This document shows positions 23,035 to 62,363 of a stretch of DNA of 64,000 nucleotides, one piece after another. Made by a program: the position numbers and the translations under genes. Source of the DNA: Styela clava (Eukaryota); assembly GCF_964204865.1 (NCBI RefSeq), contig NC_135264.1:13268001-13332000 (forward strand), written 5' to 3'. Numbering within the stretch: position 1 is the stretch's first letter; the number at the start of each line of letters is the position of its first letter. The notes under the pieces were generated by a model that worked only from the letters and a program-made list of their open reading frames with translations, searched no databases and had not been told where the DNA came from.

Positions 23035-24096
23035 ATGTATTCTGGAGATGATATAGAACAGCTGTCGGAACATGAAAATATACAAAATCAAACCAGCGGA
23101 TACGCTCAGGGATACAATTGGGAGGCTGAATATTTATCTCTAAAAATATTGCGTCCTATTGCAACTTCATTCTCTCTGTACATGGCAGTAACACAAACAA
23201 TATACTGCTTCATCCAAAGGAAGAAGGATAAATCAAGAAATTGCAAAGTACCCGAAGCTAGAAGATTTGGTTTACGACTCAAATTCCTCATGAATGCATT
23301 TTTGGCAGCGTCCTGTATATTCACTACGCTTCGAGGTGCTCTTACATTTCAATATCCCTTGCTGACCAACCTCGAATGCAAACAATGGACATCGGCAACG
23401 TTTGTCTTTTATGATGTTGCGATGCTTCTGGCATACGCGGTGTTGTGGTTGCGACAACTCTCCTTCTATGCCAACCCTTCTCTCAAGCAATTGGAATCTA
23501 AATTCACCAGATTCATAAGCTGGTGTATTATAATATCCATGGTGGCATCGTCGATGTCTGTTATATGCTCTGGACTTATTTTACACGAATACCAATCATC
23601 TGAATATGGATGTATAGCGGTGCCAACTACGTTTGCTTACGAATATGGTCTTCTTATAGGTTTCACTGTGCTGTATCAAGGCAGCCTGCTTGGACTCTTC
23701 ATCTATCCATTAATTAAACACAATAAGAACGCTGGAGTGAACTACATTCGGGATTTGATCAGACGTGTCGCTGTAGCTGCAGTGATTTGCGTTGTTACGG
23801 ATGCCTCATGTGCAGTGTTTTCTGTTGTAAAACCAGAGAGAGAAATTGAATTAGCTTTCTTTATGTATTTCGTGAATCTGAATGCCAATGTTGCCTGCGT
23901 AATTTTCTCCTTTTCTGACTGGAGAAAACGACTTTTACCATTCAGGAGGAAGTCAAAAAGGACGAAAAATGGGCGAATATTCAAGATTTCTTTTGTGTAT
24001 AATCCAAATAAATCAACAATGAGTGGAATGCGAATACGTCGCGTTGCTCCAACTTGTAATAAAGGGACTAAAATTCCAGGAATAACAACTGATTAA
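23035..24096 (+). CDS. Intronless 7TM GPCR-like protein, 353 aa (paralog A)
   Basis: Seven hydrophobic segments, Cys at the top of TM3 and in ECL2 (LEC...YGCI), LWLRQ at the end of TM3, DWRKRL after TM7. Confidence 0.8.
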   Translation: MYSGDDIEQLSEHENIQNQTSGYAQGYNWEAEYLSLKILRPIATSFSLYMAVTQTIYCFIQRKKDKSRNCKVPEARRFGLRLKFLMNAFLAASCIFTTLRGALTFQYPLLTNLECKQWTSATFVFYDVAMLLAYAVLWLRQLSFYANPSLKQLESKFTRFISWCIIISMVASSMSVICSGLILHEYQSSEYGCIAVPTTFAYEYGLLIGFTVLYQGSLLGLFIYPLIKHNKNAGVNYIRDLIRRVAVAAVICVVTDASCAVFSVVKPEREIELAFFMYFVNLNANVACVIFSFSDWRKRLLPFRRKSKRTKNGRIFKISFVYNPNKSTMSGMRIRRVAPTCNKGTKIPGITTD

Positions 24097-24829
24097 GAGA
24101 CAATGGCGCGATTAAGAGACAATGGCGCACTTACCCCAAAAAATAGCTTGTTACGAAAATGCATTGAAGACGTTAGTGCCCTGAACTTAAATCGAAGAAC
24201 ATCATCACAAAAAATTATGAAAAAAAAAATTCTTATAATAATCAATTGTGGAGTTGAATGTTGTCACACATTTTCGTAAGCAAGCTCGTGTCATGTAAGC
24301 GTAAGAATATTCAATGTGCAGTAGTATGGATATATTTCAATTTTGTCCAAGTTTTGTTTTTAAGCTGCATTAAATATTTCAATAAAAAACCTCACTTTGA
24401 ATTTCGTATTTTTTCTGGTTGTTCAACATTTCATTACGGCGAATGAGAAATATATTAGGCCTCATAGTTTTAGTTTGTTCTAAGTTAAGTGATGTTCGTT
24501 ATCTCATATCAAACGTTTGGTATATTTTAAAACTTATTTTCACTTTGAGTCATGTTCTGTTTAATTTTTATTTTTTGGTGATCATGCATTAATTAAAGAG
24601 CTTGTGCTCTATACTTGATTTAAAAACAAATCATTCAATATTTTTAAATTTTTATCGAATAGCCTCAAATCGAATATTTGAGCAACAAATATTACTAGTT
24701 ATGTATATATTCTTATTATTTGATTAAAACTGACTTTTTTCTGACAGCCAATAGGGACACGTACGTTGGTATTTGGCCGGCAAACGGTTGGGTTTTGAAA
24801 CAGTTACTAGTATTTTCGTTGAAATACAA

Positions 24830-25924
24830 ATGTCGTCTTCAGAGTTGGACATCAATGGTGTCAATAATGATGCAAGAACGTCCCACCATATACTAATCAA
24901 TCAATCATCAATTACCTCTCAAAATTACGACTGGGAAACTGAATATTTTGCTCTTAAGATATTGCGACCAGTTGCAACATTATTTTCAGTTTATATGTCC
25001 GTGACACAAACTATGTATTCTGTTAAGCAAAAAAGGAAAGATTTTTTACGCGCCAGGAAGAAAAACCGCAACGGTAATTCTGCACTACGTCTAAAATTTT
25101 TGATGAATTTAGCCATTGCTTCATCTTGCGTATTTGCATCTATCAGAGGAGCAATGGCGTTCCAGTATCCTTTACTGATAGACGCGCAATGCGAGCTATG
25201 GACCTCAGTTACCTTTGTCCTTTACGATATGTCAATGTTTCTTGCATACGCTGTACTATGGATGAGACAATTGTCGTTTTATGCCAACCCGTCGCTAGGA
25301 AAATTGGCTTCAAAATGGACAAAAATGATTAGTTGGTTTATTTTACTTTGTATGACAACATCCTGTCTTTCAATAATATGCTCCGCACTGATCGTCCATG
25401 AGTACAAAGCTTCTATGTATGGGTGCATTGTAGTGCCTCCCACCTATCCATATGAGTACGTCTTTCTGGTTTTCACAACGATACTTTATCAAGGCAGTTT
25501 GCTTGGCCTTTTTATCTATCCACTGGTGAAGAATAATAACAACATGGGAATAAATTATGTGCGAAATCTAATCAAGCGTGTCGTCATAGCAGCAGTAGTC
25601 TGCATTGTCACGGACGCGTCATGTGCTTTGATTTCATTTATAATGACAAGAGACGAGGTGGAATTATCCTTTTTCGTGTACTTTGTGAATCTCAACATGA
25701 ACATTGTTTTTGTTGTATGCTCTTTCGGCGACTGGAGAAAACGTTTCTTTCCCTTCAGCACGAAGGAAAAGGAAGTCAAGTATAGTGTGAATATTTTTCA
25801 CATTTCTGCGGTGTTCAAATCAAATTTATCGAATACACAGGGAATACGGATTCGTCAACTTAGGAAGCATTGCAAGAATCAGTCGACCACCATTGCAGAG
25901 GGAAAACAGCGATCCGAAAACTAA
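24830..25924 (+). CDS. Intronless 7TM GPCR-like protein, ~364 aa (paralog B)
   Basis: Colinear with paralog A (YxWExEY, LKILRP, AYAVLWxRQLSFYANPSL, LYQGSLLGLFIYPL, DWRKR). First ATG is at 24830; the ORF track starts at an upstream TTG. Confidence 0.8.
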   Translation: MSSSELDINGVNNDARTSHHILINQSSITSQNYDWETEYFALKILRPVATLFSVYMSVTQTMYSVKQKRKDFLRARKKNRNGNSALRLKFLMNLAIASSCVFASIRGAMAFQYPLLIDAQCELWTSVTFVLYDMSMFLAYAVLWMRQLSFYANPSLGKLASKWTKMISWFILLCMTTSCLSIICSALIVHEYKASMYGCIVVPPTYPYEYVFLVFTTILYQGSLLGLFIYPLVKNNNNMGINYVRNLIKRVVIAAVVCIVTDASCALISFIMTRDEVELSFFVYFVNLNMNIVFVVCSFGDWRKRFFPFSTKEKEVKYSVNIFHISAVFKSNLSNTQGIRIRQLRKHCKNQSTTIAEGKQRSEN

Positions 25925-31600: not shown

Positions 31601-34600
31601 TTCGGGAGTATCCAAACTTTTAATATTTACCCTATTCAGGAAGTTCAAAAAATTGACATCATCGGCGGAAATTGTGGCGGAATCACTTTATCTAATGGAA
31701 ATAACGTGAAGAGCAACATTGTTCTATCCAACGCCACCCCTCATGTCACCTTTCAAAAATTACTAGCAGAAGATTTTGATGTTTTACCAGAAAAATACAG
31801 GAAACAAATAACAAGTTTTGACTATACTTCTCCGGTGACAAAATTAAATAGTGAGATATGGGTTATTCGTATTGGTCTTTCTCATTGAAATAAATAAAAG
31901 TATTAGTTTTCTGGTGACAAATACAATTTTCAACCACTGAAAACTTCAAAGCAAGTGGTCCAGTTATTAAAGAAAAGCGATTATTTTATAACAGCAAGAA
32001 AAAGAGTCCATGCTTCTGAAAACTAATACCTGTCTTACTATTCCCATAACCGACATGGACTGGTATCCGAAAGAAAGGCCATCATAGTAGTATCAGTAAG
32101 CCGTCTCGGCTCTATCGGCTCTCATCCGGGATAACTATGTAAATCCTATTCTAAGAACATTCTATAACAACAACAACAACATAGTACAGATCTATAAGTC
32201 AACTTCGTGTCCAAAAAGCGCTCTTACTTTTTAACAGTCGCTGTGGACCGAATTCCAAAATTTTTAGCTCTACAAAGCAGCAAGCCAACTGAGGTGCCAA
32301 ATCAGTTAAAAGGAACGATACATTTAAACTGCGAAGACATTGGATGCATTAACGATGCTTATTTGGATGCCATGCAGGGCAGGTTTTCTAGGAGGTTAGA
32401 TTCGAACATTAGTTTTAATTAATAGAATTCAAGTAAATTTCAAAGAAAAAAAGGTTGCATCCCCTTTTATTCCAGATATTCCGGACAACATGCCTAACAG
32501 GTAATGCTGGGCATTTTGAATCGAATAGCAAATTTGAATAGGTTTAGACAAAATTTCGAATCGTTGCAATCTTTTTTTTTGTCCGCCAAAGATTGAATTG
32601 AATTCCTAATTTATTTTTATTGAAGCCCTATTTTAACAATGTAATTCTGACATATGACTCTTCCGTCCTAGTGGGTTATTGATGAAACACATTTTTCTCA
32701 TTGTGTGTGAACGGATTCTATGCCCTAGGTAATTTATGTGTGTGGAGGAACCCATTACAATAAAATAGTCACATTCAATTACATATCTTATCAGTATTCG
32801 AGATTCGAAAAATTTCGATTATTTCAAAATTATTCGATTTGAAAAAAAAATATTTGATTCAGTTCTGAAATCATCAGGTATTCGAAAATGCTTAGCCCTA
32901 CAAACAGGAAGGGTACTAGTTCTGCACTTGTGTCGTACACATATGTATTTATTTACTAATCCCACATTCAGGCCTATGATTGAACTATGTATACCATCAA
33001 CTGTGGACACCACACTTGCACCGAAAGGCCATCACGTTCTATCTGTATTTACTCAATATACACCTTATTACTTGAATGGAACACAAGAATGGACGGACTC
33101 TGATCGCGACGATTATCGTAAAATAGGTAATAGATAAAGTTTCTCTATTCCTCTAACGAATCTGCGGTACTACCGTAGTGTGTGTACCAGGTTTGGATAT
33201 TCCAATTTTCCTTGTTTTAGTTCTATTACGAGTTTGGGGACTGTCTGTGTTATCCAAGTGAATATACCCCCTGCCCACAGGCTTCAGTCACTTCACACAA
33301 CTTGATGTAGAATAGGCGAACAAAATTAGTTACCTCCATATTGGTGCACACACTTTTGAAGCGCCGAATCTGCAACGGAGCGTCCTGCTGCACACTAACA
33401 CAAATATTTTCTGTACCAAACCAAAGTCTGACTTCCTTCGACATAGATTATTATTCAACTACAACATGTAGAGAAATTACATGCACATTTAAACAATAGG
33501 TGTCATAGCAACATAACAATGTCATACCAATGGGAGTTAAGCAATTTGACGAATCACTAGAGTCGGTGATTGTATAATTAATTAACAGCGGGACACTGCG
33601 ATGATGTATTTGATAGATTGTACAGATCTAACCTATTGCAGTATTTCAAACTTACATACTTTCCATTTATTTTTAAAAGTTTCCACACAAAATGTTGACT
33701 TGCTTGTTTTTAACTATCTGTTTGTCAGTGTTCAAAAGTATTGAAGATTATGCACCTGGCTTCATTGATAGTGTTGTTGGTTACGAGGTTCTGACGCCGA
33801 TGGATTTAGAAAATACATTTGGATTAACAGGAGGGGTAAGCAATAATTTGGTTATTTGGAAGTTTTGGCCTGACGGACATTTGGTTGGCTTGGTTAACTG
33901 AATAAGTTAAGTGGGCAAAAGCTGCAAAAAACACGCTAAAACGTGCAAAAATTGTGTTTTTTTGGTTTTAGACGGCTTTTGCACGTTTTGGACACGTTAA
34001 ATGGGTATAAACCGTCCAAAACACGCTAAAACGTACAAAAAAAAGCGTATTTTTGGTGGTTTTAGACGGCTTTTGCACGTTTTAGACACGCTCATACGTG
34101 TATAAACCGTCCAAAACACGCTAAAACGTGCAAAAGGCGTGTTTTGGTAGTTTTAGACTATTTAAAACACACTAAAAAGAAATTTCAATGAAACATAGCA
34201 CTGTTTGATTACATATCTAGAATATTTTCCACGGTGCAATTGGTTTGGATCAGCTTTTTCTATCTCGACCAACCTCGTTCATGGCATCTCAGAGAACGCC
34301 CTTACAAGGATTATACATATGTGGAAGTGGAACACATCCCGGTATGTTTTTACATTTGTCTTACACTCTTAAAAGTTGAATATAACTTTATACTTTTCTA
34401 ACGTACATCTTTCAGTGCTATGTATTTTCAATAATGTTATCATGCGTATACTTTAAAAGTCTCTAGTTTTTCTCAAATACTAAAAAAATATTCAATGTAA
34501 TATATCTACGACTGTAAAATTAGAAAATTGTTTAAACTGATATTTTTAATCAATTTATATAAATTCTCGTACCAACAAAACAAAATCCTAAAAATCAGTT

Positions 34601-34708
34601 TTCTTGTTATTTATAGGCGGAGGAGTCATGGGCGCATGTGGAAGACTGGGAGCAATGGCTGTTTTATCTGATCTCAAATCGAAAAAAATATCCAAGAATT
34701 CATCGTAA
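28699..34708 (+). CDS. PYROXD2: Pyridine nucleotide-disulfide oxidoreductase domain-containing protein 2 (phytoene-desaturase-like flavoprotein), multi-exon
   Basis: [13 protein letters not shown] dinucleotide-binding motif, [51 protein letters not shown]...[49 protein letters not shown], all on GT-AG exons. Confidence 0.93.
30165..30380. mobile_element. GGTAC...GCGCC MITE copy
   Basis: Same family as 6144-6346. Confidence 0.8.
30938..31169. mobile_element. hAT-type MITE with AGTGGCG termini
   Basis: AGTGGCGCATCC ... GATACGCCACTG inverted ends; partial flank duplication CTTGCG. Confidence 0.6.
33166..33365. mobile_element. GGTAC...GCGCC MITE with perfect 8-bp TSD (duplicated copy at 37531-37730)
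   Basis: TSD GAATCTGC on both flanks. Confidence 0.88.
33925..34175. repeat. ~95-bp-unit minisatellite, ~2.5 copies (duplicated at ~38295-38535)
   Basis: Repeating AAACACGCTAAAACGT(G/A)CAAAA...GGTTTTAGACGGCTTTTGCACG...GTATAAACCGTCC. Confidence 0.8.
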
Positions 34709-34997
34709 AACGATTGACTTGAAAAATTCAGCTTTTCAATTCTAGTAGCATTTCAGGCAAATCGTACAGTTGAAATTGATATATTGATATTTACAACCAA
34801 CTAAACATAAGATCTATTTTTTCGCAAAACGTCTCATCTGTAATTGTGATATCCTTCACAGCTGCACTTTTCCCCTATGTTTGGGTCTAATAATTTAAAG
34901 TTTTTTGATAACAAATAAGACGGAGAATGCTTCACTTAGAAATATATTGTGATGAAAAAATAAAATTGGAAAAATTCAAACACGAAAGATCATTCTT

Positions 34998-35836
34998 TTA
35001 TATTGCGGTTTGTGGTGTTTCTAGTAAGAATTTACTGAACTTGTCGTAGTTAAGAATTCCATTTGTTTCCTCCTGTCCTTGCATCATTGCTGATACTTGA
35101 GCAGATGTCAACTTTTCTCCTGAAAGAGAAATCATATAACAAGATAAGATTTGTTCTTCCAAACGATTCTAAATTAATTCCAAATGATGAACCGATAAGA
35201 CGATATAAGTTGTTTCATGGGGCTGTCAGGTATGGCATGAGAATAGCTTAGAAAAGTCAAAATGTTTCACTAAACACGAAATTAATTATTGCATTATCAA
35301 AAGTATTGGATTAAGGATTTAATATTAAAGGTTTATTTTAGTAGCCGCTTTTAACTCTGGGGAATTTTGAGTTTGTAGTATTCAGTGAAATTGTAGAAAT
35401 GGTGTTTTAATATAATCAAAACATGTTGTTACAATAATATTTCATGCGTTTGTTTGTTTAAAGAAAAAAATCAATTGAAAAAATTACCCAGAGTTGTCAG
35501 AACGTGTCTGATTTCAGCACCCATGACAGTGCCGTTGCCGTCTTTGTCAAAAACTCTCAATCCTTCCATGAAATCTTCATAAGTTCCTTTGACAGATTCT
35601 TGAATAATTTTAGTGTAGATAGGCAAAAATTCTTCAAGTCCTATTTTCTTTGCCAAGTCGTCTTTACACGGATTTCCCAGCATTTTATCAACATCTTCGT
35701 TCGTTGGACATTCTCCCAAAGCTCTCACGATGTCACCGACTTGATTGAGAGCGATCTTGTTGTCGCCGTCTTTATCGAAAAGCTCAATGGCTTCCTTGAT
35801 GTCTTCCATTTGTTGTTCGTTGAATTCGATTGCCAT
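34998..35836 (-). CDS. Alkali (essential) myosin light chain, copy 1, 156 aa. Exons 35836-35488, 35119-34998
   Basis: [61 protein letters not shown] (MYL1/3/6-type). Confidence 0.95.
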
Positions 35837-37330
35837 TGTTTAGTTGTGATGGTTACTTCTTGCTAGGATATCCAAAGTTAGAATGATAATTTCAGGAAGC
35901 CCTGAGCGGTATTTATACCTAATCGTACACCATTCATTAACACCCCAACCAACACCAATTTGTGCTAAACAGTGTTAAATAGTACTTCCACCGCGAACTT
36001 CCATTCACCCCAAAAGGGGAAAATCATTTAAGACCATGACCGTTGTTTTATAATAAAGTATATTGACTTAAAAGAATTCGTCAACATGCTCGGTAAATAT
36101 TTACGAATAAAATGAAGAAGTGCGATATCTCAGAAATTTAGACAAAATAGAGTTAAATCAACAATAGTGTCTCCAGCTTGTTAATGCCTGCAGACAATTG
36201 ATCAAATATTTATTCATTCGCCGTATTCGGGTATTATTTAAATTGAAAGTTAAAGATGTTTAAGTAATAGCAGATTGATCACGATTCTCTTCATAACTTC
36301 TCACAGGGGAGAGTAATTTTTATAATACTCCATGAATCTTTAATAAAGATTAGATCCGTAGAACTTCGTAACGCTTGCCCGTTTGTTTGTTTCATTGTGT
36401 GTATTTTTTTCAGTAAAATCAATGACCACGTCGTAACGCTGACCTCCACAGAATTTCCCTCGCTTTTTAGAGGGGGGGGGGGGGGGGGGGGGGAGGGGGG
36501 CACATGTGAATTTGCGTCAAATATTTCATCAAATATTTATCTTTTATCACAAACATCCTACGCGAAAAAACACACATACATGTTCGAATAGAGATAGTTC
36601 GTCGTTTAACATGGGTTGCAATGTACATTCTTTACAGACAATAGGTAATACTCATTTCAACTTCAACAAAAAGGAATTGTCAATCTGATATTAAATTTTT
36701 TTTTATATGATTCAAGTAAACGGATTTATGTTTCAACCTGCAATGCTAAGTAAATTCCTAAAATGCGTTTTAGTAGCATTAAAACTAGTTTTAAATATTG
36801 AATTACTTATCTCGACCATTCAAGCTATGAAAGTCCGCGTAATTCATTTCAAACCTAACTTGAAAATGGATGAAAACCTGGCAATAATAAGTACTCACTC
36901 ATCTCCTAATATATATCAACCGTTTTGAAATATTGTTGAAACCCTTGTTAAAATTCACAAAATTAATGGAACTTTATGACGAGGTTCATAGAGATTATGT
37001 CTTTTATTGAAAAGCTTCGGACAGCATTCACAAAAGTCGAAATACTCGATAAAAATATCACCATCCTCCATCATATCCAAAACCAGCGAATATTTTCAAG
37101 TCATTATTTCCCTATTGCACTTTATTAAAGGGCAAAGGTCGTACATAGTCTTAGGCTATTTATCACCTTTTAGGATAAAGAAAAGTTCAGGTTCAATAAA
37201 GAAAAGTTCAGAAAGATTCAGTTCTGAAATCATCAGGTATTCGAAAATGCTTAGCCCTACAAACAGGAAGGGTACTAGTTCTGCACTTGTGTCGTACACA
37301 TATGTATTTATTTACTAATCCCACATTCAG

Positions 37331-39101
37331 GCCTATGATTGAACTATGTATACCATCAACTGTGGACACCACACTTGCACCGAAAGGCCATCACGTTCTA
37401 TCTGTATTTACTCAATATACACCTTATTACTTGAATGGAACACAAGAATGGACAGACTCTGATCGCGACAATTATCGTAAAATAGGTGACCGTGATAGAT
37501 AAAGTTTCACTTTTCCTCTAACGAATCTGCGGTACTACCGTAGTGTGTGTACCAGGTTTGGATATTCCAATTTTCCTTGTTTTAGTTCTATTACGAGTTT
37601 GGGGACTGTCTGTGTTATCCAAGTGAATATACCCCCTGCCCACAGGCTTCAGTCACTTCACACAACTTGATGTAGAATAGGCGAACAAAATTAGTTACCT
37701 CCATATTGGTGCACACACTTTTGAAGCGCCGAATCTGCAACGGAGCGTCCTGCTGCACACTAACACAAATATTTTCTGTACCAAACCAAAGTCTGACTTC
37801 CTTCGACATATATTATTATTCAACTACAACAAGTAGAGAAATTACATGCACATTTAAACAATGGGTGTCATAGCAACATAACAATGTCATACCAATGGGA
37901 GTTAAGCAATTTGACGAATCACTAGAGTCGGTGATTGTATAATCAATTAACAGCGGGACACTGCGATGATGTATTTGATAGATTGTACAGATCTAACCTA
38001 TTGCAGTATTTTAAACTTACATACTTTCCATTTATTTTTAAAAGTGTCCATACAAAATGTTGACTTGTTTTCTTTTAACACTAACTATCTGTTTGTCAGT
38101 GTTCAAAAGTATTGAAGATTATGCACCTGGTTTCATTGATAGCGTTGTTGGTTACGAAGTTCTGACGCCGATGGATTTAGAAAATACTTTTGGATTAACA
38201 GGAGGGGTAAGCAATAATTAAGTTATTTGGAAGTTTTGAGCTGACGGACATTTGGTTGGTTAATTGAATATGTTGAGTGGGCAAAAACTGCAAAAAAACA
38301 CGCTAAAACGTGCAAAAAGTGTGTTTTTGTGGTTTTAGACGGCTTTTGCACGTTTTGGACACGCTAAAATGGGTATAAACCGTCCAAAACACGCTAAAAC
38401 GTACAAAAAAGCGTATTTTTGGTGGTTTTAGACGGCTTTTGCACGTATTAGACACGCTAGTACGTGTATAAACCGTCCAAAACACGCTAAAACGTGCAAA
38501 AGGCGTGTTTTGATAGTTTTAGACTCTTAAAACACAATGAATAGAAATTTCAATGAAACATAGCACTGTTTGAATACATATTTAGAATATTTTCCACGGT
38601 GCAATTGGTTTGGATCAGCTTTTTCTATCTCGACCAACCTCGTTCATGGCATCGCAGAGAACGCCCTTACAAGGATTATACATATGTGGAAGTGGAACAC
38701 ATCCCGGTATGTTTTTACATTTGTCTTACACTCTTAAAAGTTTAATCTAACTTTATACTTTAACGTACGTACATCTTTCAGTGCTACATCTTAACGTACA
38801 TCTTTCAGTGCTATGTATTTTCAATAATGTTATTATGCGTATACTTGAAAAGTCTCTAGTTTTTCTCAAATACTTAAAAACTATTCAATGTAATATATCT
38901 ACGACTGTAAAATTAGAAAACTCTTTAATCTGGTATTTTTTACCAATTTATATAAATTCTTGTACCAACAAAACAAAATCCTAAAAATCAGTTTTCTTGT
39001 TATTTATAGGCGGAGGAGTCATGGGCGCATGTGGAAGACTGGGAGCAATGGCGGTTTTATCTGATCTCAAATCGAAAAAAATATCAAAGAATTTATCGTA
39101 A
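37331..39101 (+). other. Duplicated last four PYROXD2 exons (promoterless, reading frames and splice sites intact)
   Basis: Copy of 32971-34708; ends in KKISKNLS* versus KKISKNSS*. Confidence 0.85.
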
Positions 39102-39408
39102 AATAACTGAACTGGGAAATTCAGCTTTTCGATTCTAGTAGCATTTCAGGCGATCAGTATAGCAAAAATTGATTATATGGTGAACACACTGAATATATTT
39201 ACACCCAACTAAATCTAAGATCTATCTTTGCGCAAAACGTTTCATATGTAATTGTGATTTCCTTCACAGCTGCACTTTTCCCTTATGTTTGAGTCTAATA
39301 ATTTAAAGTTTTTTGATAACACAAAAGACGGAGAATGCTTCACTTAGAAATATATTGTGATGGAAAGATAAAATCATTGGAAAAATTCAAACACGGAAGA
39401 TCATTCTT

Positions 39409-40253
39409 TTATATGGCGGTTTGTGGTGTCTCCAGTAAGAATTTACTGAATTTGTCGTAGTTAAGAATTCCATTTGTTTCCTCCTGTCCTTGCATCATTG
39501 CTGACACTTGAGCAGATGTCAACTTTTCTCCTGAAAGAGAAATCATATTACAAGATAAGATTTGTTCTTCCAAACGATTCTAAATTAATTCCAAATGATG
39601 AACCGATAAGACGACATAATGAGATGTTTCATCGGGTTGTCAGGTATGGTATGAGAATAGCTTAGAAAAGTCAAAATGTTTCACTAAATACGAAATTAAT
39701 TATTGCATTATCAAAAGTATTGGAATAAGGATTTAATATTAAAGGTTTATTTTAGTAGCCGCTTTCAACTGTGGTGAATTTTGAGTTTGTATAGTTTTCA
39801 GTGAAATAGTAGAAATGGTGTTTTAATATAATCAAAACATGTTGTTATAATAAAATTTCATGCGTTTGTTTGTTTAAAGAAATAAATCAATTAAAACAAA
39901 TTACCCAGAGTTGTCAGAACGTGTCTGATTTCAGCTCCCATGACAGTGCCGTTGCCGTCTTTGTCAAAAACTCTCAATCCTTCCATGAAATCTTCATAAG
40001 TTCCTTTGACAGATTCTTGAATAATTTTAGTGTAGATAGGCAAAAATTCTTCAAGTCCTATTTTCTTTGCCAAGTCGTCTTTACACGGATTTCCCAGCAT
40101 TTTATCGACATCTTCGTTCGTTGGACATTCTCCCAAAGCTCTCACGATGTCACCGACTTGATTGAGAGCGATCTTGTTGTCGCCGTCTTTATCGAAAAGC
40201 TCAATGGCTTCCTTGATGTCTTCCATTTGTTGTTCGTTGAATTCGATTGCCAT
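39409..40253 (-). CDS. Alkali myosin light chain, copy 2. Exons 40253-39905, 39530-39409
   Basis: Protein reads identical to copy 1; only synonymous changes seen. Confidence 0.95.
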
Positions 40254-41537
40254 TGTTATGATGTGATGGTTACTTCTTGCTAGGATATCCAAAGTTAGAA
40301 TGATAATTTCAGGAAGCCCTGAGCGGTATTTATACCTAATCGTACACCATTCATTAACACCCCAACACCAATTTGTGCTAAATAGTACTTCCACCGCGAA
40401 CTTTTATCCACCCCAAAAGGGGTAAAATCATTTAAGACTATGACCGTTGTTTTATAATAAAGTATATTGAGTTAAAAGAATTCGTCAACATGCCCGGTAA
40501 ATATTTACGAATAAAATAAAGAAGTGCAAAATCGCAGAGATATAGCCGGAATAGAGACAATTCCACTAGAAAGGCCATAAGCCTTTTAATGCCTACAGAG
40601 AATTTATCAATTTTTTATTCATTCGACTTAGTCGGGTATTATTTGAATTGAAAGTTAAAGATGTTCAAGTAATAGCAGATTGATCACGATTCTCTTCATA
40701 ACTTCTTAGAAAATTAGATCCTTAGAACTTCGTAACGCTTGCCCGTTTGTTTTGTTTCATTGTGGGTATTTTTTTCAGTAAAATCAATGACCGCGTCGTA
40801 ACGCTGACCACCACAGAATTTCCCTCGCTTTTTAGAGGGGGGGGGGGGGAGGCACATGTGAATTTGCGTCAAATATTTTAATCTTTTTTCACAAACATCC
40901 TACGCGACAAAACACACATACATGTTTGAATAGATATAGTTCGTCGTTTAACATGGGTTGCAATGTACATTCTTTACAGACAATCGATAATACTCATTTC
41001 AACCTCAACAAAAAGGAATTGTCAATTTGATATTAAACTAAAATCGAAAATGTTTTTATATGATTCAAGTAAACGGATTTATGTTTCAACCTGCAATGCT
41101 AAGTAAATTCCTAAAATGCGTTTTAGTAGCATTAAAACTAGTTTAAATATTGAATTACTTATCTCGACCATTCAAGCTATGAAAGTCCGCGTAATTCATT
41201 TCAGACCTAACTTGAAAATGAATGGTACTCACTCATCTCCTAATATATATCAACTGTTTTAGAATATTGTTGAAACTCTAGTTAAAATTAACAAAATTAA
41301 TGGAACTTTATGACGAGGGTCATAGAGCTTATGTCGTTTATTGAAAAGTCGGTGTTGTGGACAGCATCCACAAAAGTCGAAACACTCGATACAAATATCA
41401 CCATCCTTCATCATATCCAAAACCAGCGAATATTTTCAAGTTATTATTTCCCTATTGCACTTTATTAAAGGGCAAAGGTCGTACATAGTCTTAAGCTATT
41501 TATCACCTTTTAGGATAAAGAAAAGTTCAGGTCGGAA

Positions 41538-41608
41538 GTGCCAACACCTTTTCAAGACAGCAAACGGTGCTGGGGTGTTAATGAACGGTATGCGATTAAG
41601 TATAAATA
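41538..41608 (+). promoter_or_regulatory. MLC proximal promoter: T-box-like GGGGTGTTAATGAA plus TATAAATA (equivalents at ~35910-35946, 40327-40363, 45258-45293)
   Basis: The same 14-mer sits 14-15 bp upstream of TATAAATA in all four MLC copies, although the intervening and flanking DNA of copies 3 and 4 has diverged. Confidence 0.7.
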
Positions 41609-41681
41609 ATGCTCAGTTCTCCAAAAAGTTATCATTCTAACTTTGGATATCCCATCAAGAAGTAACCATCACAACAGAACA

Positions 41682-42470
41682 ATGGCAATCGAATTCAACG
41701 AACAGCAAATGGAAGACATCAAGGAAGCCATTGAGCTTTTCGACAAAGACGGCGACAACAAGATCGCTCTCAATCAAGTCGGTGACATCGTGAGAGCTTT
41801 GGGGGAATGTCCAACGAACGAAGATGTTGATAAAATGTTGGGAAATCCGTGTAAAGAAGACCTGGCAAAAAAGATAGGAATTGAAGAATTTTTGCCTATC
41901 TTCACTAAAATTATTCAAGAATCTGTCAAAGGAACTTATGAAGATTTCATGGAGGGATTGAGAGTTTTCGACAAAGACGGTAACGGCACTGTCATGGGAG
42001 CTGAAATCCGACACGTTTTGACAACTCTAGGTAATTTGCGTTAATTGATTTATTCCTTTAACCAAACAAACGTGTTAAATTTCAAATGATGAATATTATT
42101 TTGCAACAACGAGTCTTGATTTAAATAAAACACCATCTCTACTATTTCACTGAAAACTACGAACGAAAATTTACCACAGTTGTAAGCTATTACTCGACTG
42201 AACCTTTAATACTGAGCAATGAATTCAATATTAAATTCTTGATTGTTCAGCTATTCTCATACCAGACCTAATAACTCTGTGAATTGACATGGTTAACTCT
42301 CTAATTATTGCCACTGTCAAGTAGAATGAAAAAATTTTTTTTTTGCAGGAGAAAAGTTGACATCTGCTCAAGTATCAGCAATGATGCAAGGACAGGAAGA
42401 AACGAATGGAAGTCTCAACTATGACAAATTTAGTAAATACCTTCTAGAAACACCACAAACTGCCATATAG
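41682..42470 (+). CDS. Alkali myosin light chain, copy 3. Exons 41682-42030, 42349-42470
   Basis: Same exon sizes (349+122) as the other copies; head-to-head with copy 2. Confidence 0.95.
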
Positions 42471-43978
42471 AAAAGAGAAACGATTTTTCGTGTTTGACTT
42501 TGTGAAATGATATGATTCTGTAGAACAATATAATATTCTGCTATTGGATATTTGGACTAGAAGTTTTAAGTTTTGGCGAGTGTAGAATCCGGACAGGCTG
42601 CTTTGCTTAATCAGTAAGCTGGACTTCGAAAGACTCAGTTCAATTGATTTGAATCTGATATTGGAAATGTACTAGGTACACATAATTGCAACGTTAAAAT
42701 TAAATTTGAGTAGTTAAATCAAAGAAGCAATAGCAGTGAATTTACTCAGGTCAAGTTAATACTCTGATAAACACGACGGAAAAGCAAGTAGAATGACGGC
42801 TACTATAAAAAAAATTAAAAATTATTAATAAACATTTAGCAGATTAAAAACTCCTAAACAAGTCAGGAAAATTTGACTCCCGTAAACAAAACAACATTGA
42901 AATAACCAAATGCGAGAACCAGAGATCCAACGTGCGCCTCGAATGTAGATTGCAGGAATGCGGTTGTAAAGCGTGATGGAGCCAAACACACGTGACAGAG
43001 TATAATGCGTTGCCAGATTTCATAAAAAGGTGGCAATGATTTAAAATGAAACAGCAATTTTTTTGGTTGATATGTCGGATTTTTAAAACTCGGAAAATTT
43101 GAAAAATAAAATAAAAATAATAGCTTTTCAGCTGCTTCAATCATCTTTGGGCACTGATTTAATTTAAAATCAATTGAGGTCGACTAGTTACGAAAAAGGC
43201 GATTTTTTACAAACGTTTTCTATGAAGCTAATCTCGACGCGCGCACATCCAATTGGGGCCGTTTTCTAGGGTGACACTTTTATCACTTCTTTACCGGTAT
43301 TGAATAAAACGCCACTGGGAAACACAATCCCCACCGTGTTAACAATATCGATCCATAGTATGCATATTATTCCTATTCAACAAGACCAATTCATGAACAT
43401 AACTACCATAAGCGTTGATATCTTTAGTAGGAAGCCCAAGGCAAAAAAGGTGAGATATCAGAAAAACACGTCATGTTATAAGTACTGAAAATTGCGTTCG
43501 AACCGTTTTAATTAATCGTGTGTTCGCTTTTCCAAACCCTGACACTGCTGATTTCGATCAATGAATAGAAAATTGTAACTGGTTAATTACATTTTTTATT
43601 TAGAGTGGTGACGGGGGTGAGAACTGTCCGCCTTGAGGTTCACTGATGAAGTATTTTCCGTCAGTTGGCACAATGCCCATTAGTTGGCTGTGCAATTTTT
43701 CAAGTCCAAATCGTCTTTTATTCAGCGCTCAACTTGCTACTCCATGCAGCTGTTGGTGAGTTGCGATATTTACCACCTTTGACAAATTCATAGTTTTGCA
43801 CCGATTGGTACGATTTATCGACTAATGGATGCAAAGTAAGACTAATCTACCACTAACGTCACAATAAAAAAATTCCGCTTAAAAGATACTTTTTTGGGAC
43901 CAAACTCTTTTCCTTTTTTTATTCACCAACAGTGTTTTACAGGCTTGTCCACGAGAATGAAATTTCCTATGAGAAACG

Positions 43979-44274
43979 TCCTATGTGATGGAATGGGACA
44001 GCAAACATTTGTATTTCCCATGGCACAATAGACATGATAGAGCAATTTGATTACGTCGAAGCTAACTTCTGTCTTTATACTTTTTCACCTTTCAAGTGTT
44101 TTCACTCTCCTCTTTCTTGATATACTTGTATATATCTATTATTTATTTTGTGATGAGGCACAGACAGGGTTGTCTATGTCTATGAGACTGGGGTTCGCAT
44201 GGAAATCTCCAGGCTTGTTCTGGGAAACATCCCTTGGATGGAATGAGACAAAAATATGTCCTTTGGACGAGCCT
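43979..44274. mobile_element. hAT-like MITE
   Basis: CAGGCTTGTCCA ... TGGACGAGCCTG inverted ends. Confidence 0.55.
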
Positions 44275-44506
44275 GGTGTTTCATACACCAGATGCTTCAT
44301 ATATACTGGATTTATATACCCAACCATGTAATAAATTTCGATTCATCAAGTTCATTTTTAAGCTTTAATTAGAAATAATAATAAATAACATACAATAACA
44401 GAAGTATATAGTGTAAGAATTCATTTTGTTCAGTATAACCCAAACAAGTAAAAATCCATACACTAACATAAAAAGTCAAGCTAGTTCGTTCTCAACGTTT
44501 TTAAAG

Positions 44507-45175
44507 TTATATTGCCGATTGTGGGTTCTCCAATAAGAATTTGGAGAATTTGTCGTAGTTAAGAATTCCGTTTGTTTCTTCCTGGCCTTGCATCATTGCT
44601 GAAACTTGGGCTGATGTCAACTTTTCTCCTGAAATATATAAATGAATATTGATAAACAAATTGTATTCTTTGCAGTAGAAGAAGCTCTTCATTGCTAATA
44701 AAGATTCCTCGCGAACTGCAGCATATTGTTTGCTGTAAGTGTAAACAATACCCATTTTGTAAGCGTTCGTAGAATCAAACTGTATTTAAAAAAGAAATAA
44801 AGCGAAGTAAAATTAAATAAGTTTACCTAGAGTTGTCAAAACGTGTCTGATTTCAGCTCCCATGACAGTGCCGTTGCCGTCTTTGTCGAAAACTCTCAAT
44901 CCTTCCATGAAATCTTCATAAGTTCCTTTAACAGATTCTTGCATAACTTTAGTGTAGATAGGCAAAAATTCTTCAACTCCTATCTTTTTTGCCAAGTCTT
45001 CTTTACACGGATTTCCCAGCATTTTATCAACATCTTCGTTCGTTGGACATTCTCCCAAAGCTCTCACGATGTCACCGACTTGGTTGAGAGCGATCATGTT
45101 GTCGCCGTCTTTATCGAAAAGCTCAATGGCTTCCTTGATGTCTTCCATTTGTTGATCGCTGAATTCGACGGCCAT
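44507..45175 (-). CDS. Alkali myosin light chain, copy 4 (most divergent). Exons 45175-44827, 44628-44507
   Basis: [25 protein letters not shown]...LLENPQSAI; same intron position. Confidence 0.95.
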
Positions 45176-46346
45176 GTTTTTTTTTCGCTGTTCTATTTGC
45201 TGACTAGACAAGTGAGATCTCTTAGTTGTGAGTGATGCTATCTACTGAACTACAAGGTATTTATACAGAATTGTAGTGTTCATTAACACCCCCGAAAACA
45301 GCTTCAAGCAAAAGGTGTCGGAATATCCGGCGCCACATTGTTAGAAATTGATAAAGGCGTGAAAGTCGAAAGGTAATTCCACGTGTGAAAATGGCTATAC
45401 TGGTGAGATTGCTGCTGCGAAAAAGAACTTTTAATGTAACCTAAATTTGAAACCCACGATTTTATGTGTCATCTCACTACATTCAGTTTGAGCTATTTTA
45501 TTAATAGATATCACATATGATCCTACAGATACATCGCTACTGCAATTTTAAATTGAAGAATTGTCCTGAATGGAATTCCCGATAAACAGGGATACTGGAC
45601 TGATTGAGCGTTTCCGCATTTGCTATAAGCATTGGGTGTAGAGGTAAGATCGAGCCCCAAAAAAATTCAAACCCGGCCCGACTCAGGCCTGTGGGTAATA
45701 AACCCGACTCGAGCCCGATTAATTAACTGGATTTGCAGGCTCGAGTCCGAAGCAAACACGAAATTTCATATTTTACTTAAGAGTATTTTGAATTCCACAC
45801 ATAATTTTAGTATATATATATTTTTTTAAATATATATTTATTTAAAAAAAAGTCCGAGATAGAGGGGCCCAACCCGACCCGAACGTAATGGTTGACATTT
45901 CAGGCTCGGGTCTTCAGATCTTAGCTCCAATTGGGTGGTATGAGCTAGGCAAGGGTCGGCAAACTGCGTCCCGCGTGCCTAATTATTAGCTGCACTCTGA
46001 TTTATGTCGTAACGATGGCTTCTGTACGGCATTTCCTTTGTAGTAAGTAAGCGAAAGCACATGTTAGTTGTATGTAGTTCGCTCTCCGAACGTGCTTTCT
46101 ACTGTCTTATTTGTTATCATCAGTTAAGTTCAGCTTGATATTTAAAATTTGAAAATGGATGGAAAACGTCGAAAAGTCAATGCGGCCCGCACACTACCGG
46201 AAATGTGTATATTTGGCCCATTATTGCATAAAGTTTGCGGCCACAGAGCTATAGAGTAACATGCAATAATGAACCACTGCGCTGAACAAAACGACAATAA
46301 ATCAACAAATTTCCATATAATTTGAAAATTAGTAAACTTAAAATAC

Positions 46347-58997: not shown

Positions 58998-59001
<4 letters not shown>

Positions 59002-59028
<27 letters not shown>
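59002..59028. repeat. (AT)n microsatellite
   Basis: Direct reading. Confidence 0.95.
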
Positions 59029-59862
59029 CTGACTTCATACGTTTAAATTACATTCTTAGGACCATTTATTCTATTCCGACGCGTAAAAATTTTGCGTTCG
59101 TCTTCTTCAGCTGCGAAAAACCGCGAATACACACAAAACAAATCGTAGATAACTAAATTGACAATGTCTGACAATCAACGCGTCTGGAAAGAAGGTGACT
59201 GCAAACAACTTCCCCGTACAAATGAAACAGAGTCAGTACTATGCGTAAAACTCTTTTAATATAATAAATAATTACAGTGCGTATAATTAAAATGTGCAAT
59301 TAAAATTTACGGATTCAAATTTCCATAATAGTCGATTTAAACCATATATATATTGAGAAAAATACTCAAATTATTTCGATTAATGAAAATATGCCGAATA
59401 AACAGTATTACGTATATAATATTTCAGTGAATTATGTAATTGTACATTGAAAAATTATGTTTACGATTATGTAAGTAAATATGACATCATAACAACGAAT
59501 TATCATCATTGGCGTATCTGTTTGCTCCTTTTTTAGCTATATATTATTTAATGTAACTAATCATAAAATGGTCCATGGCCGAGAAAATAGGCAGTCAAGT
59601 GGGATTTAAATTATAATTGGACGATATAATTTCAATTAATATAAAGCTCAGGTAAAATTTCTACAGTTTAATTACAGTAAATAGTGAAACATTCTAAGAA
59701 TTAAGAAAAATAACAAAATAATGACATGTATAATTCATAAGAAAAATTTGCCCGTGTGGCCAACAATGGGTTATATTAAGCAAATCTTGTGAAATTTGAT
59801 TCATTTTCTATGAGCCATTGTGGGTCTTAATATTTAGTGACGTATTGCATCCGTTTGACCTT

Positions 59863-61689
59863 CTATCGGCTTCCGCCTCCAACTTCCGCCATTACGACCT
59901 CTCCATTCATAACATCATCCATAATGTCATCTGTGATTTTTCCAACAAGAAGTAAGTAACCATGCACGTCACCGAAAGCAGTAGATGGTAGTGCGTTAAG
60001 GTTTTCTCCAGAGCGTTTTTCTTGCGTCATTTCAGCACTTCTGCGTAAAAATAGAACGTAAAAACGTGAATGTATCCTACTTTGAATCAAGTTATTTTCG
60101 TTATCTTTTTACGTACATAAATAGAATAATTTGAAAACGTAAATTATCCGCGTGCGTGAAATTGTGGGTAGACGGCATAGTACATGTTATCTCATAACTA
60201 TCGGTATAGGTACTATGAATATTAGATAAGTAAGCTACCCTGTTGTGTATTAACAGAGTCATATAATGTTTCATATATATCGCATTAAAATAAATGTATA
60301 TAATAAAAGATCTCTATTCAATTTCCGACCCTCCGTATTAATAGAAAGCACACAATAACAAATATATTAATTTTGTCAATACATTTGAATTATTTATGTG
60401 AAAAAAAACAAGGTATTATTTTCTTGTCTGTGTTAAGAATAACAACTTGGCTCACTTTGAAAATTACCGATCTTTTGTCAGCGGATTAATTCTTAATTCA
60501 AGATATAAAGTTAGGCATGAGCAAAAGACGTCTGTACCCGTTTGTGGGCATTGGTTTAGCTTTGTGTTTATATTAATAATTACAGTGGATTATGATATTC
60601 TCATCACGTTTCTGCGAAACACATTTGCAAGGCAAATGTCTGTAGTCTTTGAATGATTTGAATAGATTTTGTTTTAAACTTAATTCTAATATTGTTGACC
60701 TAAATTTGCAAATGCAATGTCAGTATTCTCACTTATAGTCTTTTTCAAAGCCACCATCACCAATGCAAAAATATGAGATTTTGGGAAAACATCCCTGCCA
60801 CTTTGTGAGATAAAAAATTATGGAGTATCCAGGGTTAGAGTTACGAATGACTTGAAAATTTGAATTTCCAGTGTACTCCCGTAATATGTGTACCAGGTTA
60901 AGGTTGAGCCATAATTTTATTCAGATTTTCCTTTTTTTTAATTCTATTAAGAGTTTGCGGACTGTTTGTGTCAGCCAGGTGAATACACCCCCTGCCCATA
61001 GGCTTCCGTCCCTTTACTCAACTTGACATAAAGTAGGCTGACAAAATTAGTTACCTCTATATTGGTACAAAAACTTCTGGAGCGCTGTTTCTTAATATAG
61101 AAATCTATACCTTTTGCCGACAAGCATGCTCAAGAGGCGTCTGACAGCAGCACGGTCTTCTCCTCGTCCTCTTTCAGAAGTGTACATTGCATGTGAATAT
61201 CTTTTTTCGGCGATTTCATGTTCTTGACCTGATCGTTTTGCTTCGGATTCTTCGAGTGATGCCAGTTGTCTGAATTAAAGTTGGATTTTAAATTGACACC
61301 AGGCTTTAAGGGAGAAATCTTAACACGTCACATTAATGACAAAATGCTGAGTTCATGGGGATATTTAACAGCTTGCGCTGTATCCAGCCATGTTTGTTTC
61401 AAATATTAGAAACTTCGGGCTAACGATTCATCTTTAGCACGCATCTCCAGAGATGAAATACCACGCTGAATGTAAGACTTGTATTCCCCTAAATGGGAGA
61501 GCTTCTTCTGCATTAAATGCTTATTTGTTCAGTTCACAAATATAAATTATGTCGTAATAATACAAACAGAATTTACCTCATAATTCGTTCCTGTTCAATT
61601 GGTACAATGCTAGCTGATTCTGACAATTTGATGTACGTTGATATCATAAGTAACGCAGTGATGCAGAGAGTAGAAGAAATCGAATTCAT
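59863..61689 (-). CDS. Secretin/PACAP/VIP/glucagon-superfamily prepropeptide, 149 aa. Exons 61689-61577, 61269-61111, 60040-59863
   Basis: MNSISSTLCITALLMISTYIKLSESASIVPIEQERIMR|QLASLEESEAKRSGQEHEIAEKR-YSHAMYTSERGRGEDRAAVRRLLSMLV-GKR|SAEMTQEKRSGENL...: signal peptide, dibasic sites, a 27-mer with amidation signal, and both introns phase 2 GT-AG. Confidence 0.85.
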
Positions 61690-62226
61690 GTTTATAGTTA
61701 GTAGACTTTGAAATACTGTTAAATTATACTTATCTATACTAAAAATAAAACATTGAGTCAAAAATCAGCAGAATATCGTGCTCTCGAGGGTAGAGGTGTT
61801 TACTACATTACAGTTGTTAGTGTGGCATACCAACTGATAAACGTAAAGAAAACAAAATATGAACCATTTCCCTTGGTGAAGCTTCATTGCCATAAAAGTC
61901 AGTAGGTTTTTTCAGAAGATCAAATCTCAATAATCACGTAATGATCCAACTATAAAATCATTTTGCCGTCGAGAAAAGCATTTGTAAATTGGAAAATGCA
62001 CGGAGTATTGAAATAACCCAGACGAGTTTAGTTTTGTTGATCGACAAACGAGCTAATCAACAATACCGATTCCAGATAGCAAAAGAATCGATTCAGTATC
62101 ATATTAAAGTTGTGGTAATCCTGTAAACAGACAACTCATCCAAGTACAATCTGAATAAAAGCATTTAATCTATAAAATTCAGTCCTTAGCTAGTCTAGAT
62201 GTTGCTTCTTGGCTTGTCCAGACGCT

Positions 62227-62363
62227 TGAATGACAATGACAAGATGCGCCCCTGTATTTATACCCGCCAGAAGATGGAGGGTTGAATTTTTCTTATCGCT
62301 GTGTATTCACTGGTTGCTGGGGCAACAGAAAAAAATGTGCGTGTCGTGCGTCATTTTTTGACG
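62227..62363 (-). promoter_or_regulatory. Promoter of the peptide gene: Inr-like TCATTC (~62227-62232), TATAAATA (62255-62262), inverted CRE half-sites (62349-62363)
   Basis: Motifs read directly; TATA-to-Inr spacing is canonical. A splice acceptor (TTTAACAG) ~27 nt before the ATG implies a non-coding first exon. Confidence 0.65.

Follow-up and report, generated by a model that had tools for sequence, protein, structure and literature searches.

The 64,000-nt stretch of the Styela clava genome analyzed here (hereafter the window; RefSeq assembly GCF_964204865.1, contig NC_135264.1, positions 13,268,001 to 13,332,000) carries, on its minus strand between window positions 59863 and 61689, a three-exon gene for a 149-residue protein with a putative signal peptide and a 27-residue peptide set between basic cleavage sites. 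This gene, LOC120334221, belongs to a stolidobranch ascidian, and the likeness of its predicted peptide to secretin and PACAP, the precursor that contains it, and the receptor on which it might act are the subjects of this report.

Gene structure and predicted processing of the precursor

The coding region is divided as follows, with positions counted from the first letter of the window.

61577–61689, minus strand: coding exon 1; ATG, 37 codons plus 2 nt, donor AG/GTAAAT; putative signal peptide and start of the N-terminal spacer
61270–61576, minus strand: intron 1; GT...AG, phase 2
61111–61269, minus strand: coding exon 2; 159 nt, acceptor TTAATTCAG, donor AAAAG/GTATAG; acidic spacer with an internal Lys-Arg, a short acidic piece, Lys-Arg, the 27-mer and Gly-Lys-(Arg)
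61119–61199, minus strand: predicted mature 27-residue peptide, precursor residues 62–88, with predicted C-terminal amidation via the next Gly
60041–61110, minus strand: intron 2; GT...AG, phase 2
59863–60040, minus strand: coding exon 3; acceptor TTTTTACGCAG; a 7-residue acidic piece, Lys-Arg, then an acidic C-terminal peptide of 49 residues that ends at the stop TAG (59865–59863)

Both phase 2 introns split an arginine codon (AG/A) and keep the frame, giving a spliced product of 37 + 1 + 52 + 1 + 58 = 149 residues. The peptide exon is missed by a list of open reading frames (ORFs) because its ATG-initiated ORF is only 31 residues long, and no second hormone-like exon was seen in intron 2. 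When exon 2 was searched against 1.84 billion representative proteins, one match was returned, a protein of 149 residues that is 100% identical over residues 39–90: RefSeq XP_039257621.1/.2, "uncharacterized protein LOC120334221 [Styela clava]". Version.2 of this record equals the spliced product of the window at every residue, and the same exon model was chosen independently by the NCBI pipeline, which is known to retain models without a SwissProt match only when they have transcript support. The gene is thus already in RefSeq but unrecognized, and a literature search found no paper that mentions LOC120334221, its accession or the first residues of the peptide. A search of the 377-Mb S. clava genome with exons 2 and 3 for paralogues returned the gene itself only, as a single copy. 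The two RefSeq versions differ solely at residue 106 (Pro in.1, Leu in.2 and in the window), which lies in the C-terminal peptide of exon 3, outside the 27-mer.

Much of this structure had been proposed in an initial annotation made from the letters of the window, without database searches. Its three small exons yielding a 149-residue protein were reproduced exactly from the sequence and the exon translations, its 27-mer at 61199–61119, flanked by Lys-Arg and followed by Gly-Lys-Arg, was found in the sequence as described, and the peptide exon is indeed absent from the ORF list. Its guesses at an ascidian origin and at an automated label of "uncharacterized" both agree with the S. clava record XP_039257621.

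The precursor has the features of a small secreted prohormone. A putative signal peptide spans approximately residues 1–25, judged by the rule of thumb of a hydrophobic core followed by small residues at −3 and −1: the core covers the 14 residues 7–20, Ser occupies both −3 and −1 (Ser-x-Ser) before Ala26, and cleavage is likely between Ser25 and Ala26. Four dibasic sites are well placed in the precursor. A Lys-Arg pair (61205–61200) stands directly before the 27-mer, and Val27 is followed by Gly-Lys-Arg (GGC AAA AG/A; 61118–61111 plus 60040), so the precursor carries on a separate exon (61269–61111) a candidate hormone within the range of ~27–44 residues usual for the family, bounded by basic cleavage sites. 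The Gly-Lys-Arg occupies the place, next to residue 27 or 28, where secretin, PACAP27 and VIP have their signal for amidation and cleavage. The C-terminal peptide encoded by exon 3 is strongly acidic. A single-sequence AlphaFold2 model of the precursor placed a helix over N-terminal residues 4–23, with a mean pLDDT of 40 that makes the model low in confidence and uninformative.

From the Lys-Arg and Gly-Lys-Arg sites, dibasic cleavage and amidation of the 27-mer may be predicted: the signal peptide would be removed first, prohormone convertases would cut the two dibasic sites flanking the peptide, a carboxypeptidase would trim the basic residues, and the exposed Gly would be amidated to leave a 27-residue amidated peptide. 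We take LOC120334221 to be a real gene, present in one copy and encoding a small secreted prohormone, that is very probably expressed to give a processed, secreted peptide.

Likeness of the 27-residue peptide to secretin and PACAP

The ends of the peptide are set by Lys-Arg and Gly-Lys-Arg, independently of any comparison, and the register of alignment is thereby fixed. In this register the 27-mer scores 43 against human secretin and is identical to it at 11 of 27 positions (Ser2, Thr7-Ser8-Glu9, Arg12, Ala17, Arg21-Leu22-Leu23 and Leu26-Val27), a count recomputed here that agrees with the initial annotation; the human secretin string used for the comparison also occurs in two secretin papers. 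This score was reached by 1 of 2,000,000 composition-preserving shuffles in fixed register, by 10 of 1,000,000 shuffles when any offset was allowed, and by 21 of 2,000,000 (~1e-5) when hydrophobic positions were held, which is a conservative null for amphipathic helices. Against PACAP27 the score is 30, with 6 of 27 residues identical, and was reached by 100 of 2,000,000 shuffles. Among the 28,092 stop-free 27-mers of the window, this peptide scores highest against both hormones.

The likeness to secretin lies at the two ends of the peptide. Residues 1–9 reached their score in 177 of 2,000,000 shuffles and residues 17–27 in 230 of 2,000,000 (each ~1e-4), and the same segment test found no likeness to secretin in residues 10–16. 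In ligands of class B1 receptors, the N-terminus activates the receptor while the C-terminal helix binds its extracellular domain (ECD). The N-terminus of the 27-mer, Tyr-Ser-His-Ala-Met-Tyr-Thr-Ser-Glu, agrees in part with the family pharmacophore (His/Tyr1, a small residue 2, Gly/Ala4 and Phe6-Thr7): it fits at Tyr1, Ser2, Ala4, Thr7 and Ser8 and departs from it at position 6, where Tyr replaces Phe. At the other end is a C-terminal amphipathic helix with Leu23 and with hydrophobic residues at positions 19, 22, 26 and 27, and its hydrophobic face (Val19/Leu22/Leu23/Leu26/Val27) coincides with that of secretin (Leu19/Leu22/Leu23/Leu26/Val27). The whole 27-mer has a net charge of +2 and is moderately amphipathic.

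Human secretin (SCT) is likewise a 27-residue hormone, amidated and followed in its precursor by Gly-Lys-Arg; that precursor is small, contains no other hormone and has a separate exon for the peptide. The Styela peptide differs from it in having Tyr1 for His1, His3 for Asp3, Tyr6 for Phe6 and a Gly-rich center, and its precursor, unlike vertebrate secretin, has no match to the Pfam family Hormone_2. Other members of the family share different residues with it: Ala18-Val19-basic-basic-x-Leu23 is held in common with PACAP and VIP, and Tyr1 and Ala4 with GHRH. In contrast to the PACAP-like subfamily, the Styela peptide is without Asp3, Tyr10, Arg14-Lys15 and Gln16, all listed as conserved (PMC2880984), and its precursor contains one hormone, where PACAP-type precursors contain two. 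Secretin itself has been recorded only from tetrapods (PMC2880984).

Language-model matches point in the same direction. For the whole precursor, the nearest clusters in the ESM Atlas are those of "VIP peptides-like" and "somatoliberin" precursors (0.91), and 25 of 30 matches are to Hormone_2, with galanin and tachykinin precursors next at 0.86–0.87. The best clusters share 181, 178 and 173 of 256 features with the precursor, and by the calibration of the tool at least 170 shared features are typical of true family members. With residues 58–92 alone, the top three matches are to Hormone_2. The "recognition" value of 2325 falls in the range of real families.

Comparison with amphioxus and with earlier tunicate sequences

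Three PACAP/GCG peptides of Branchiostoma floridae are given in Table S4 of PMC9049855. For one of them, PACAP/GCGa, activation of the receptor of amphioxus has been reported (On et al. 2015, cited in PMC7251081). Under the scoring used above, amphioxus PACAP/GCGa reaches 40 against secretin and only 12 against PACAP27. By that same measure of sequence likeness, the Styela peptide is no less vertebrate-like than this accepted family member, and both peptides are far from the vertebrate sequences typical of Pfam. The two have TSE-x10-RRLL-x2-L in common at identical spacing, and their direct alignment gives 9 identities over 27 aligned residues with a modest score of 23, reached by ~1 in 100 shuffles. 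The precursors also correspond: in B. floridae and B. belcheri, as in Styela, a basic pair precedes one amidated peptide that is followed by Gly-Lys-Arg and an acidic C-peptide, and the amphioxus "a" transcript has the same three coding exons (signal, peptide and C-terminal). The account of the amphioxus PACAP/GCGa precursor is said to go back to Mirabeau and Joly (2013) together with On et al. (2015).

These correspondences suggest that the Styela peptide may be the tunicate counterpart of amphioxus PACAP/GCG. There are differences between them: amphioxus PACAP/GCGa has 31 residues, including one extra at the N-terminus, whereas the Styela peptide has 27; it keeps Asp at the equivalent of residue 3, where Styela has His; and the amphioxus gene has an extra alternative exon with two further peptides. 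The pairing of peptide and receptor has been shown experimentally in amphioxus; for the Styela peptide it is a prediction.

"PACAP" cDNAs from Chelyosoma productum and Halocynthia roretzi, reportedly described by McRory and Sherwood in 1997, have been claimed as tunicate members of the same family. These cDNAs are 85–96% identical to vertebrate PACAP, have not turned up in any tunicate genome, and have had their authenticity questioned (PMC7251081, PMC2880984). The Styela gene, in contrast to them, is genomic, contains introns and is highly divergent.

Candidate receptors in the S. clava genome

Two class B1-type ECD exons were found in the same genome. One, at C2:15.786 Mb, is closest to GLP2R/GLP1R (5e-6) and belongs to a gene whose exon for the third transmembrane helix (TM3) is closest to the human secretin receptor (2.2e-13) and whose TM2 reads ...SFIIRYVVILIKD..., keeping Arg2.60 and the IKD motif. 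The C2:15.78 Mb gene is thus a class B1 receptor gene of the cognate type in the genome that encodes the candidate ligand. ECD exon C of this receptor, searched alone, had no match in the PDB, and a complex prediction with the receptor ECD as three separate exon chains plus precursor residues 62–91 gave a score of 0.01, which counts neither way. The other class B1 gene, at C14:6702300–6724163, is PTH1R-like, with an ECD exon matching human PTH1R at 1.4e-11; no description of an ascidian ligand for such a receptor was found in the literature.

Tunicates (Ciona) have receptors of the GCGR subfamily and no confirmed ligand gene (PMC7251081). If the Styela peptide is such a ligand, its C-terminal amphipathic helix (Val19, Leu22, Leu23, Leu26 and Val27-amide) would be bound by the ECD of a class B1 receptor, its N-terminus would activate the transmembrane core and cAMP would rise, with the secretin/GLP-1-receptor-like gene at C2:15.78 Mb as the likeliest receptor.

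Within C2:15756000–15787000, an exon for positions 161–246 of the 7tm_2 profile is present three times, at 15760005, 15770041 and 15778892 (~9–10 kb apart), and two of these copies are ~99.5% identical over 551 bp, intron included; part of the gene has been duplicated in tandem recently, or else the assembly is at fault here. The strongest 7tm_2 matches in the genome, at C13:20.37 Mb, belong to an adhesion G-protein-coupled receptor (GPCR) with a GPS motif and were set aside as not class B1.

Possible membership of the secretin family and alternative explanations

Several results weigh against membership of the family. One is His at position 3, where every member of the family carries Asp, Glu or Gln. 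His1, Asp3 and Leu23 are present in all PACAP-like groups (PMC2880984), and His3 is a true anomaly, since position 3 is among the most conserved features of these hormones; in addition, the C2 candidate receptor keeps Arg2.60, the usual partner of an acidic residue 3. In addition, Tyr stands in place of Phe6, neither Tyr10 nor Gln16 is kept, and the central helix contains two Gly residues. Furthermore, secretin was chosen post hoc from many hormones and the peptide from many windows. Taken as one comparison planned in advance, the shuffle statistics would be strong. Because both were picked from many possibilities, allowing for ~10^4–10^5 implicit comparisons leaves the end-to-end sequence match suggestive rather than conclusive.

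Profile and homology searches belong on the same side. The initial annotation had offered the lack of any similarity to Hormone_2 as grounds for rejecting its own reading, and such a lack was what we found with standard profile tools: neither the individual exons nor the whole 149-residue protein matched any Pfam family at E≤10, Hormone_2 (PF00123; 28 positions, gathering score 21.2 bits) included. Run over the whole S. clava genome, the Hormone_2 profile does not return this locus. Its best match there (C14:4708289–4708339, 19 bits, E 0.86) consists of an RLLGQL...KWIL stretch preceded by QKRK; it has no hormone-like N-terminus, adjoins an ORF repeated in tandem, and is probably due to chance; a second place, at 18.5 bits, contains a stop and was likewise rejected as chance. 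A phmmer search of exon 2 against all PDB chains, which are expected to include the solved chains of secretin, PACAP, VIP and glucagon, returned nothing at E≤10. A crude hidden Markov model built from five family peptides ranks exon 2 first among 3,988 open frames, at a non-significant 9.2 bits (E 0.22). No homologue beyond XP_039257621 was found for exon 2 among the 1.84 billion representative proteins, none for the whole protein or for residues 50–95 among 5.8 billion proteins, and none in a search of metagenome contigs. Finally, the ESM evidence and the sequence likeness draw on the same letters and are not independent of each other.

The failure of the profile searches is real, yet as a disproof it is weak, because the profile has 28 positions and the accepted amphioxus peptides are themselves <17% identical to vertebrate PACAP (PMC7251081). 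Since the profile and residue 3 were both tested and neither agreed, the gene is not filed here as a Hormone_2 member. What stands of the earlier proposal is the precursor architecture and, by the shuffle tests, a real likeness to secretin and PACAP; its further claim of a genuine class B1 ligand is favored by that likeness, the ESM matches and the receptor gene, is opposed by the missing Hormone_2 match, and is carried forward as a hypothesis of family membership. On balance, we lean toward the view that the peptide is a divergent member of the secretin/PACAP/glucagon ligands, or at least their functional equivalent, with a class B1 receptor as its target. More tentatively, and with rather less than even confidence, LOC120334221 could be an orthologue, long missing from tunicates, of the PACAP/glucagon/secretin gene of chordates, encoding the natural ligand of the ascidian orphan secretin/GLP-1-receptor-like receptor.

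Alternatively, LOC120334221 may encode a lineage-specific (orphan) neuropeptide or hormone precursor whose likeness to secretin is convergent or fortuitous and whose product acts on another receptor, such as a rhodopsin-type GPCR. The failure to match any Pfam family, any PDB hormone or any homologue among the 1.84 and 5.8 billion proteins is what such a gene would show, and His3 breaks the most conserved position of the pharmacophore; ascidians have many taxon-specific peptides (PMC5818035), and the galanin and tachykinin precursors at 0.86–0.87 in the ESM list imply that part of that signal is a generic one of neuropeptide precursors. However, a likeness of this origin would have to survive the hydrophobic-pattern shuffle (~1e-5) and to fall at both functional ends, in the right register, in a peptide of the same length followed by the same Gly-Lys-Arg. 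One family accounts for 25 of the 30 ESM matches, and an orphan secretin/GLP-1-type receptor is in need of a ligand (PMC7251081). We regard this explanation as unlikely, though it is the rival that best survives the evidence.

A narrower possibility accepts a class B1 ligand but assigns it to the PTH1R-like receptor at C14:6.70–6.72 Mb, as part of a PTH/TIP39-type system. The clear PTH1R-like ECD exon (1.4e-11) lends it substance, as does the presence of both systems side by side in amphioxus (On et al. 2015, as cited in PMC7251081), and the Arg/Leu-rich C-terminal helix of the peptide is of a kind common to class B ligands in general. This assignment is nevertheless improbable, given that the ESM matches are to Hormone_2 and not to the Parathyroid family. 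An amidated 27-mer with an x-S-x-x-x-aromatic-T-S start is not known among PTH-type peptides.

It is slightly less probable still that the gene is an annotation artifact or a non-functional transcript yielding no bioactive peptide: the absence of homologues in the protein searches and the low confidence of the AlphaFold2 model would be expected of one, whereas three open pieces joined in frame through canonical splice sites, a signal peptide, four dibasic sites, a model kept across two RefSeq versions and an ESM recognition value within the range of real families would not. A host-defense (antimicrobial) precursor in the style of clavanin or styelin, with a signal, an amidated helix and an anionic C-terminal propiece, is the least probable of these alternatives and highly doubtful, for although S. 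clava is well known for antimicrobial peptides that are helical, amidated and made with acidic propieces, the C-terminal peptide here is strongly acidic and PACAP is itself antimicrobial (PMC6248945), the 27-mer has a net charge of just +2, only moderate amphipathicity and a polar N-terminal half, and no antimicrobial-peptide family appears among the ESM matches.

Significance for the origin of the family

No genuine gene of the secretin superfamily has been shown in any tunicate (PMC7251081, PMC2880984), and a PACAP/GCG-like system has been validated in no invertebrate other than amphioxus (PMC7251081, PMC2880984, PMC9049855). Against this background, LOC120334221 is a credible candidate for a secretin-superfamily ligand encoded in a tunicate genome, which would be the first, and one that is cheaply testable: with a genomic candidate and a receptor in one genome, the question of the tunicate ligand can be put directly to experiment.

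If the peptide is a member of the family, it would close the gap that separates amphioxus from vertebrates in accounts of how the secretin/VIP/PACAP/glucagon hormones arose and would show which residues of the pharmacophore are ancestral. The secretin-type signature of the Styela peptide (Thr7-Ser8-Glu9, Arg21-Leu22-Leu23 and Leu26-Val27-amide) is found in part in amphioxus PACAP/GCGa, so that, were the Styela gene an orthologue, the ancestral chordate peptide would have been secretin-like and "secretin" features would be older than vertebrates. His3 would then represent a lineage-specific change in the activation of the receptor by its ligand. Should the class B1 reading fail, the gene would still encode an uncharacterized ascidian peptide precursor worth naming.

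Flanking elements and the rest of the window

Candidate regulatory and processing elements flank the coding exons on both sides.

62349–62363, no strand assigned: palindromic pair of cAMP-response element (CRE) half-sites, CGTCA-N5-TGACG, ~660 bp upstream of the ATG
62255–62262, minus strand: TATAAATA box (TATA box), following the CRE pair by ~90 bp in the downstream direction; possible core promoter for a first exon that is non-coding
61690–61738, minus strand: candidate 5' untranslated region, after the strong acceptor TTTTATTTTTAG that ends at 61739, 50 nt before the ATG
59667–59672, minus strand: candidate polyadenylation signal ATTAAA, ~190 nt past the stop, assigned by its motif and position

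The CGTCA-N5-TGACG arrangement is that of the CRE of the VIP gene, and it matches once in the window against 0.03 matches expected from shuffles; the pair may serve as a CRE here too. The acceptor at 61739 could be either a cis-splice site or a spliced-leader (SL) trans-splice site. Taken together, the CRE pair, the TATAAATA box and this acceptor point either to a first exon without coding sequence or to SL trans-splicing. The upstream motifs could be read as a neuroendocrine promoter responsive to cAMP, ahead of such a non-coding exon. Downstream, an (AT)n microsatellite lies at window positions 59000–59030, ~830 bp past the stop codon.

Elsewhere in the window, the neighbors of LOC120334221 are a DUF4371 ORF, a Peptidase_M24_C exon, an NAD-binding fragment and an EF-hand cluster; none of these is known to flank members of the family in vertebrates. 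The DUF4371 domain (4.5e-17) sits in a 582-residue open frame at 121–1869 on the minus strand, which is taken for a transposase-derived gene or a transposon remnant. Two long open frames on the plus strand, at 23035–24096 (353 residues) and 24773–25924 (383 residues), have no Pfam match. At 34500–46000, a unit of ~4.4 kb is repeated in at least three tandem copies that are 88–98% identical; each contains an exon for an EF-hand (calmodulin-like) protein, and its opposite strand is also open.

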